Shown in pieces: positions 40,042 to 40,209 of a stretch of 64,000 nt of DNA. The stretch lies in the sequence record MK817115.1, one strand, 5' to 3'. The position numbers and the translations under genes were made by a program. Position 1 is the first letter of the stretch. The number at the start of each line of letters is the position of its first letter. The notes beneath the pieces were generated by a model. That model saw only the letters and a program-made list of their open reading frames with translations, did not search any database and was not told the DNA's origin.

Positions 40042-40209
40042 TTATACATGTGGGACAAACATAATGATGTGTGTTTGGACAACTCTAGTACCATCACTTA
40101 AGATTATACCATTATCACAAACATCAATCACAGTACCCGTTACCTTCACACCACCAGTAAGATAAAAATCATATATGACATTAGCATCTATCGTAAAAAT
40201 ATCTTTCAT
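40042..40209 (-). CDS. 55-aa Hfq/Sm-like protein
   Basis: Manually translated [55 protein letters not shown]; YLxxGxKxxG and VxxHxI...VP resemble Hfq Sm1/Sm2. Confidence 0.5.

Follow-up and report, generated by a model that had tools for sequence, protein, structure and literature searches.

Among the genes of the Rak2-like jumbo myoviruses, we identify one, carried in the window analysed here (a 64,000-nucleotide stretch of sequence record MK817115.1), whose small acidic product is predicted to adopt the fold of Hfq. Hfq is the central hub of small-RNA (sRNA) regulation in the hosts of these phages. The family to which the gene belongs keeps the predicted barrel but has lost the RNA-binding determinants of Hfq, and on the strength of the models it would be a new, clade-specific, helix-truncated, acidic and RNA-blind Hfq-fold protein; in the literature we found no report linking Rak2-like phages to an Hfq-like protein. 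Our favoured reading, held with moderate confidence, is that the product is a degenerate Hfq-like ring or adaptor that acts via protein contacts and not as an sRNA chaperone. The gene is the following open reading frame (ORF):

40042..40209 (stop included), minus strand: 55-aa ORF with a predicted Hfq-fold, acidic, helix-less product; orthologue of 121Q gp34 and member of phrog_17251.

The 601 bases around the ORF are 100% identical to Escherichia phage vB_EcoM_phAPEC6 (MK817115.1; phAPEC6 below), a 352.6-kb Asteriusvirus. An earlier note, made from the sequence alone, had proposed an unannotated Hfq/Sm-like protein at this place, and its coordinates proved exact on the minus strand: the 55 codons run from the start ATG at 40209–40207 to the stop TAA at 40044–40042. 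That the ORF is unannotated holds for the phAPEC6 GenBank record, which has no coding sequence over 40042–40209, but not for 121Q, where the identical ORF is carried as gp34, ‘membrane protein’, nor for many other genomes in which it is annotated too. The same label is given by RefSeq for CBB (gp306) and BF, and is attached to phrog_17251, whose hidden Markov model (HMM) matches the window ORF with an E-value of 1.1e-31 over residues 1–55.

In tblastn searches the ORF is present in 71 phage records at 41–100% identity. It is 100% or 98% identical in 23 Asteriusvirus genomes, 77%, 65% and 55% identical in more distant coliphages, 62% identical in the Klebsiella Alcyoneusvirus phages RaK2 and K64-1, and 41–52% identical in Eneladusvirus/Mimasvirus phages of Serratia, Erwinia, Yersinia, Pectobacterium and Xanthomonas. 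Screening 1.84 billion cluster representatives with the family profile gave only 25 matches, and the family is therefore narrow; 22 of these are small proteins (43–95 aa) and three are repeat modules of larger proteins, with metagenomic relatives reaching down to approximately 30% identity. A word-indexed homologue search gave only four close relatives, and scans of the ORF with Pfam, NCBIfam and PADLOC gave nothing meaningful. Relative to UE-S1 the ORF shows nine synonymous and no non-synonymous differences, at a synonymous divergence (dS) of 0.30, and the ratio of non-synonymous to synonymous divergence (dN/dS) is 0 to 0.37 across ten informative pairs (0.08–0.37 in the pairs other than UE-S1). 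Five variants in contigs from public runs (positions 40090, 40147, 40177, 40180 and 40192) all fall at third codon positions of the minus-strand frame, and all are synonymous when the codons are checked by hand. Opposite-strand ORFs (39992–40165 on the plus strand, and others) were ruled out, as all variation respects the minus-strand frame. The ORF is a genuine gene under purifying selection, conserved in Rak2-like jumbo phages, and its range takes in Asteriusvirus, Alcyoneusvirus, Eneladusvirus, Mimasvirus and uncultured relatives; conservation in relatives had been put forward in the earlier note as a check on its call, and the check speaks for the gene.

One could argue that the ORF is not a gene at all, or that it encodes a small membrane protein as RefSeq has it for 121Q, CBB and BF. 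It is short, its Shine-Dalgarno (SD) sequence is weak in phAPEC6, it has no promoter of its own, it was omitted from the phAPEC6 annotation, and its PHROG carries the membrane label. Against this stand the strong purifying selection and the deep conservation, a maximal Kyte-Doolittle 19-residue mean of 1.13 (the usual cut-off being 1.6), a longest stretch without a charged residue of only 7 aa, and a confident model of an all-beta soluble barrel, and we regard either version as barely credible. The ‘membrane protein’ label is unsupported: the phAPEC6 annotation misses a gene, and RefSeq and PHROGs mislabel the family.

The structure was predicted with AlphaFold2 as a single chain and without templates, from alignments of 9 and 26 sequences. 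The mean predicted local distance difference test score (pLDDT) was 87.6 and the predicted template modelling score (pTM) 0.69 with 9 sequences, rising to 94.0 and 0.76 with 26. Both models place strands at residues 12–17, 21/22–31, 34–37, 42–44 and 48–53, contain no helix, and leave residues 1–11 as coil. In a Foldseek search of the PDB the top 50 matches were all Hfq, at template modelling (TM) scores of 0.70–0.75 and 26–33% identity, with root mean square deviations of 1.0–2.2 Å (mostly 1.1–1.3 Å) over 46–48 aligned columns; the shortness of the protein keeps the E-values modest (2e-3). The top 30 matches among the Swiss-Prot models were likewise all Hfq, and re-alignment with VIA-align gave Z-scores of up to 8.7 over 54–55 residues. 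A VIA search of 48,161 chains, which is independent of Foldseek, put Hfq in the top eight places (Z 8.5–7.5), led by PDB 9lu5, followed mostly by Sm/LSm proteins (Z 7.5–5.8) and a few other small barrels. The nearest ESM Atlas clusters were cyanobacterial Hfq_1 (PF21979; TM 0.84, residues 1–55) and then a 61-aa PF17209 cluster, the model of the CBB orthologue in BFVD, made independently, superposes at TM 0.90, and the leads from an ESM Atlas feature search (DUF6897, DUF2642) all stayed below 0.9. The predicted structure matches Sm-fold proteins above other folds, which places it in the Sm-like superfamily (SCOP b.38). An Sm/Hfq-like fold is thus well supported by the models, and among solved structures Hfq appears to be the nearest relative, by a margin that is small but consistent. 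The Sm-fold call of the earlier note, for which a Foldseek comparison had been suggested, stood up well, as the best matches are Hfq in every structure library but the AFDB clusters.

At the level of sequence, a joint MAFFT alignment of the family with Hfq (18 rows) is collinear end to end, and its loop lengths are Hfq-like rather than Sm-like. D3-x-F5 pairs with Hfq D9-x-F11, after which a 3-residue gap removes L15–R17; Y16-L17 pairs with Y25-L26, G20 with G29, and G25 with G34, the last column being invariant in 18/18 rows. Further on, the family motif [FY]-D-N-G pairs with Hfq F39-D40-Q41-F42, the beta3-beta4 loop is 4 residues shorter, V44-Q45-T46-H47 pairs with Y55-K56-H57-A58, I48 with I59, and P53 with P64. 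The peptide quoted in the earlier note corresponds to ORF residues 15–53 and the E. coli string set against it to real Hfq residues 24–64. Its YLxxGxKxxG motif is found in phAPEC6, where Y16-L17-x-x-G20-x-K22-x-x-G25 equals Hfq Y25-L26-x-x-G29-x-K31-x-x-G34, but Tyr16 and Lys22 vary family-wide. The histidine that it counted as conserved did not hold up: once the C-terminal proline is aligned H47 falls on A58 and not on H57, and only Asteriusvirus and Alcyoneusvirus have it. A BLASTP comparison with E. coli Hfq gave 14/39 identical residues at a pairwise E-value of 0.007. Of the 38,880 PHROGs only two are matched by E. coli Hfq at E ≤ 1, the second being phrog_17251. A word-indexed search started from E. 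coli Hfq brought up nothing but enterobacterial Hfq of near-identical sequence.

The features that have been lost are those with which Hfq handles RNA. The roles of individual Hfq residues on the proximal and distal surfaces are well established. In the proximal pocket (Q8, F42, Y55, K56, H57), F42 is replaced by an invariant Gly (G34), the YKH positions are V/P, Q/T and variable, there is no Gln equivalent to Q8, and the Sm2 motif [YF]-K-H-A-I is absent. At the distal site (Y25, I30, K31), Y16 and K22 are present in phAPEC6 and variable across the family. On the rim (R16, R17, R19, K47), whose arginines have a described role in Hfq (PMC3753642), the arginines are deleted or replaced and K47 pairs with D39. 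No N-terminal helix is predicted, and all that remains of it is the D-x-F remnant, lying in coil; the loss of most of this helix and of the proximal YK(H), which the earlier note had remarked upon, is borne out by both the AlphaFold2 models and the joint alignment. The isoelectric point (pI) is 4.0–5.5 in 24/26 members and 4.72 in phAPEC6, compared with 9.8–10 for the E. coli Hfq core, and members outside Asteriusvirus and Alcyoneusvirus end in a short acidic tail in which a NET/DET motif recurs. The beta4-beta5 segment, which forms the subunit interface in Hfq, belongs to the better conserved regions. By the HMM threshold, the Sm2 motif and the RNA-binding faces the protein falls outside the Hfq family proper, and probably by its helix as well.

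These losses bear on whether the product might be an RNA-binding Sm ring that chaperones or protects phage RNA, for example the U-tailed terminator hairpin before its own gene, a role that the earlier note had considered. Sm and Hfq folds are overwhelmingly RNA binders, the loop-3 Asn/Asp (N33) is conserved, a loop-5 Lys occurs in most non-Asteriusvirus members, and the gene follows a hairpin with a U-run, the classic ligand of the Hfq proximal face. An acidic pI throughout the family, the exchange of the stacking F42 for an invariant Gly, and the absence of the rim arginines and of the YKH motif all point the other way, as does the Thr-His of the phAPEC6 protein where most members outside Asteriusvirus and Alcyoneusvirus have x-Lys. 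With the residues of all three RNA-binding surfaces of Hfq absent or variable, a chaperone role is disfavoured, and we consider an RNA-binding ring very doubtful.

The surroundings of the gene offer further clues to its role. The neighbouring genes and signals are, in the order of transcription:

40260..41384, minus strand: nrdB, class Ia ribonucleotide reductase (RNR) small subunit; upstream neighbour in 15/15 lineages examined for context.
40221..40247, minus strand: intrinsic-terminator-like hairpin (40247–40229) and U-rich tail directly after nrdB.
40218..40220, minus strand: SD-like GGG, 8 nt before the ATG of the ORF; relatives have GGAG, GGA or GAGGG at the same place.
40008..40037, minus strand: sigma-70-like promoter TTGGAA, 18 nt, TG-TATAAT (10/12 matches), between the ORF and gp176c.
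39746..39979, minus strand: gp176c, 77 aa, candidate partner; next gene in 15/15 lineages examined for context.
39340..39735, minus strand: gp175c, virion structural protein family phrog_16130.
38609..39340, minus strand: gp174c, MazG-like nucleoside triphosphate pyrophosphohydrolase (PRA-PH domain), which closes the conserved block.

As the earlier note had it, the ORF sits between the nrdB terminator and the next promoter, namely between the hairpin at 40247–40229 and the sigma-70-like promoter at 40037–40008. The hairpin has an 8-bp GC-containing stem followed by TTTTCTTAT. A stable hairpin with a U-run comes right after the nrdB stop in 11 of the 12 lineages folded, the exception being CMSTMSU, which has no stable hairpin. 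The stems are unrelated in sequence (AGGGAUUC, AAUUCAGUACU, AAGGACGC, GGAGGC, GGGGAGCAU, AGCUGGGG and others), and it is therefore the structure itself that appears to be maintained. An SD-like motif precedes the ORF start in all 12 lineages folded (GGAG in BF, fHe-Yen9-03 and the metagenomic relative L026, GGA in most others, GAGGG in another distant relative); the caveat of a weak SD was thus justified for phAPEC6 with its GGG, and a purine motif lies at the same place in all relatives. In no lineage inspected is there room for a sigma-70 promoter between the hairpin and the ORF start, and the TATAAT at 40217–40212 was rejected as the promoter of the ORF, being 2 nt from the ATG and too close to serve that start. 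These two points lead us to infer that transcripts reach the ORF by passing a leaky nrdB terminator, so that it would be expressed below the level of nrdAB. The sigma-70-like promoter downstream, which is the best of the region and is followed by GGAGAAG and the gp176c ATG at 39979, has an equivalent −35/−10 pair annotated in Yersinia phage fHe-Yen9-03. An Rfam scan of the locus gave only a chance snoRNA match (E 0.25). In one close relative the ORF is called as a 64-aa protein, with a 9-residue N-terminal extension whose ATG lies inside the loop of the terminator hairpin; this ATG (window 40236–40238) is out of frame in phAPEC6. A second terminator-like hairpin (41414–41433, minus strand; GATCCCGC-TTCG-GCGGGATT and a T-run) lies between nrdA and nrdB, so that each RNR gene has its own hairpin.

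The ORF begins 38–57 nt after nrdB in all 15 lineages read, including three metagenomic relatives at 33–36% identity. The order nrdB, ORF, 77-aa gene is the same in 15/15 lineages, with the MazG-like gene next or one further where the contig reaches, and survives even where the virion-protein gene is lost: gp175c is present in the cultured Rak2-like genera examined and absent from two distant metagenomic relatives (L024 and L026). The product of gp176c (phrog_16437) has a mean column identity of 70%, against 37% for the ORF family, and combines an acidic N-terminal half with a strongly basic, invariant C-terminal tail ending in NRK; beyond phrog_16437, domain-library scans gave no family match. 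Its annotated start at 39979 has a GGAG SD, and a longer ORF call starts at an ATG at 40009, overlapping the −10 box.

This synteny, distant metagenomic relatives included, is the sole support for the view that the protein is an accessory subunit or adaptor of the phage RNR or of deoxynucleoside triphosphate synthesis, possibly acting with the basic-tailed gp176c, to which the acidic barrel is electrostatically complementary. However, the Cys and metal motifs of the YfaE, NrdH and NrdI type are absent, the terminator parts the ORF from nrdB and the promoter parts it from gp176c, both of which argue against tight co-expression, and the gene order may be inherited collinearity. To our knowledge no RNR has a Sm-like partner. 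An RNR accessory of the YfaE/NrdH/NrdI type specifically was ruled out on composition, the protein having a single Cys, which is not conserved, and neither a metal nor a flavin motif, and we think an accessory role in general decidedly unlikely.

The reading that we favour, a degenerate ring or adaptor, would bring these observations together as follows. The protein would be a stripped-down Hfq that keeps the D-x-F start of helix 1, an Sm1-like G-x-V-x3-[FY]-D-N-G-I-V-L segment and a beta4-beta5 unit ending in Pro, in which the arginine-bearing half of the helix has been shortened with loss of the arginines, F42 has become Gly, YKH has gone and the surface has turned acidic. The barrel, and probably the ring-forming beta4-beta5 edges, would be kept, whereas the work of an sRNA/mRNA chaperone would no longer be done. 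Instead, the product might serve as a small oligomeric adaptor or decoy that acts through protein contacts, encoded in an early/middle nucleotide-metabolism block (nrdA, nrdB, ORF, 77-aa gene, MazG). Its synthesis, presumably at low level, would depend on transcription running through the conserved nrdB terminator.

A number of points weigh against this reading. The AFDB clusters are less specific than the other libraries, with DUF2642, LSM, Hfq and unnamed proteins at similar scores, and VIA Z-scores of 8–8.7 lie in the range that its makers call middling. Neither the window protein nor any of the 26 members matched Pfam, even at a cut-off as loose as E 10. An hhalign comparison of the family with an Hfq profile, small but diverse and built from four loci, gave a probability of 33% and a score of 23.1 over 28 columns of the Sm1 segment; none of 400 column-shuffled controls reached this score (maximum 21.5), which speaks for a relation to Hfq, although this is a lenient control, as shuffling destroys strand periodicity. 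The profile search of 1.84 billion proteins returned no Hfq, and in comparisons of family profiles with PDB sequences Hfq chains were among the top matches at E 0.36–1.3 only. Since the sequence similarity lies below every significance threshold, homology to Hfq is suggestive but not proven. In addition, the conserved synteny may be no more than the collinearity general to a single phage clade, and a local pocket or metal ions can allow even an acidic protein to bind RNA. The public runs that contain the locus came as Logan contigs from RNA-labelled wastewater libraries and from probable DNA runs; they carry no strand, depth or end information and so do not bear on transcription either way.

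Part of the same evidence could be taken to mean that the protein is a generic small beta-barrel that converged on the Sm topology and is unrelated to Hfq, for instance a Rof/YaeO-like acidic inhibitor of a host protein. The sub-threshold sequence evidence and the equal scores among the AFDB clusters would fit such an origin, as would the VIA scores of a de novo designed SH3-like barrel (Z 7.2) and of YaeO (Z 6.6), and many small phage proteins have such a shape. We nevertheless hold convergence to be unlikely: Hfq entries hold the top ranks in four independent libraries, the alignment to Hfq runs collinearly from end to end, takes in D-x-F, G34, F-D-[QN] and the terminal Pro, and has loops of Hfq-like rather than Sm-like length, and the reciprocal weak HMM matches also point to Hfq. 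The question concerns ancestry more than mechanism.

If the protein is a degenerate, RNA-blind Hfq, its hexameric ring may serve as a ‘second genome gate’ at the neck or as a decoy of host Hfq; we see this pair of roles, taken together, as a minority prospect. The invariable link to nrdB and gp176c and the structural use of host Hfq by T4 open readings beyond those of the earlier note. In T4, an E. coli Hfq hexamer binds the bottom of the neck protein gp14, stabilises gp13/gp14 and prevents mis-assembly (PMC12929587). It is expelled at tail joining and is absent from finished virions, and an hfq-minus host gives an approximately 2-fold lower yield (PMC12929587). The phage protein might then stand in for host Hfq in this role: on heads already filled with DNA, its hexameric ring would cap the neck protein, serving for a time as a second genome gate or assembly chaperone, and would be expelled on tail attachment. 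Indeed, the T4 neck Hfq (PDB 9lu5) is the top match of the VIA search, Rak2-like phages carry homologues of T4-type gp13, gp15, gp4 and gp20 (PMC5259590), phAPEC6 has a double-hexameric collar (PMC7247149), and virion-protein genes lie nearby. A protein that keeps the shape and edges but has lost the RNA-binding residues would also suit the needs of a purely structural plug. On the other hand, the acidic T4 gp14 meets a positive face of Hfq (K31, Q33, T49, R19, S65; PMC12929587), while the phage protein is itself acidic and its equivalents of K31 and Q33 vary in the family; moreover, the gene lies in a nucleotide-metabolism block behind the nrdB terminator and not in a morphogenesis module, and every host already supplies Hfq. 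A neck surrogate therefore strikes us as improbable.

The decoy would be a dominant-negative Hfq mimic, with subunits that co-assemble with host Hfq, or a ring that binds it, disabling sRNA regulation at takeover. The fold is Hfq-like with 26–36% local identity to E. coli Hfq, the RNA-binding residues are lost while beta4-beta5 is kept, and a gene in an early/middle genomic region would suit a role in host takeover. In Hfq itself the acidic C-terminal tip binds the basic rim, and an acidic surface could do the same. However, the enterobacterial hosts share one and the same Hfq core (100% identity), whereas the phage beta4-beta5 edges differ between genera (one of the patterns being HIPTDK-I[VLA]xF[VK]P), and identity within the family falls to 33%, unexpected for surface docking on an invariant target; most of helix 1, part of the Hfq subunit interface, is also missing. 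The poisoning of host Hfq hexamers envisaged in the earlier note receives no direct support from anything computed, and we rate a mimic of this kind as quite improbable. Should either the gate or the decoy prove true, this would be the first case of a phage-encoded protein with an Hfq fold whose job does not involve RNA.

Comparison with known systems helps to define what the protein is. With bacterial Hfq (PF17209; PDB 1hk9, 3qhs, 4jri) it shares the predicted five-stranded bent Sm barrel, D-x-F, F/Y-D-N/Q, the hydrophobic beta3 and the terminal I-x-x-V/F-x-P, along with Y-L-x-x-G-x-K-x-x-G in phAPEC6; it differs in having no predicted N-terminal helix, no R16/R17/R19 patch, no disordered C-terminal domain and no Pfam match, and in being acidic rather than basic. 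Cyanobacterial Hfq has a divergent RNA-binding pocket and acts partly through a protein partner, PilB1. The cyanobacterial Hfq-related proteins (PF21979; PDB 3hfo, 3hfn), which are the best ESM Atlas match (VIA Z 8.3 and 7.9), show no detectable sequence match to the phage protein, keep the N-terminal helix and are cellular. The T4 neck Hfq (PDB 9lu5; PMC12929587) is an Hfq-shaped hexamer with a purely structural job in a T4-type myovirus, but it is the host's protein with a basic contact face, whereas the protein described here is phage-encoded, acidic and variable at the contact positions. Archaeal and eukaryotic Sm/LSm proteins (PF01423) belong to the same fold class (Z 5.8–7.5) and rank below every Hfq representative; the phage protein lacks their D-x-x-M-N motif in loop 3 and R-G motif in loop 5, and the loop lengths differ. 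Rof/YaeO, which inhibits Rho and binds this host RNA-binding protein rather than RNA, is likewise a small acidic Sm-like barrel (PDB 6jie; VIA Z 6.6), with a structural score below that of Hfq and no sequence similarity. Small Hfq folds do occur in phages, as illustrated by gp39 of mycobacteriophage Adephagia, called Hfq-like from structure prediction, and by the 61-aa PF17209 ESM Atlas cluster with its Uroviricota members, both unrelated in sequence to the present family.

True hfq genes were found in 7 of 50,697 phage records, and at least four of these look bacterial: two are contigs of Salmonella genomes, and two, labelled ‘Acinetobacter phage MD-2021a’, carry miaA and hfq as a pair. Those from Staphylococcus with a true hfq bear the flag UNVERIFIED_ORG. 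The family profile also matches tandem repeat modules in three large, non-phage-like proteins (1051, 192 and 7350 aa), and the 192-aa protein has three repeats with ...SRIDSNTIVL[SN]DGRR[IV]PTT.... Judged from these residues, the segment G-x-V-x3-D-N-x-IVL-x-DG-x-x-IP may be a more widespread small-barrel repeat.

Some further observations concern the neighbourhood. Directly upstream of nrdB, Mimasvirus, Yersinia phage fHe-Yen9-03 and one metagenomic relative have a hypothetical gene of approximately 254–257 aa; in CBB this is gp304, for which a similarity to gp559 of Bacillus phage G has been noted. By contrast, nrdA is the gene adjoining nrdB in Asteriusvirus, Alcyoneusvirus and Serratia phage BF. 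In Escherichia phage CMSTMSU (MH494197.1, UNVERIFIED_ORG) nrdB is annotated in two pieces and small ORFs break the nrdA-nrdB region, probably the result of sequencing frameshifts. Lastly, a second ORF is missing from the phAPEC6 record at window positions 37913–38230 on the plus strand, between gp172 and gp173. It encodes 105 aa, is 99% identical to 121Q gp39 (‘virion structural protein’), and overlaps the gp173 frame (38157–38573, plus strand) by approximately 74 nt in a different frame. The 105-aa ORF and gp173 together resemble the 226-aa upstream paralogue gp172 (37216–37896, plus strand), with which they have the motif VLVYKFVPD...G in common, and they may represent a split or frameshifted paralogue.

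In summary, an acidic protein with a predicted Hfq fold and without the RNA-binding determinants of Hfq is maintained under purifying selection in Rak2-like jumbo phages. The assignment of the fold is timely given the T4 neck result, by which, as of 2026, Hfq is known as a structural helper. Conserved throughout a whole clade of phages of 350 kb, an RNA-blind, acidic Hfq-fold protein would lend itself to asking what the shape of Hfq is capable of beyond RNA binding.

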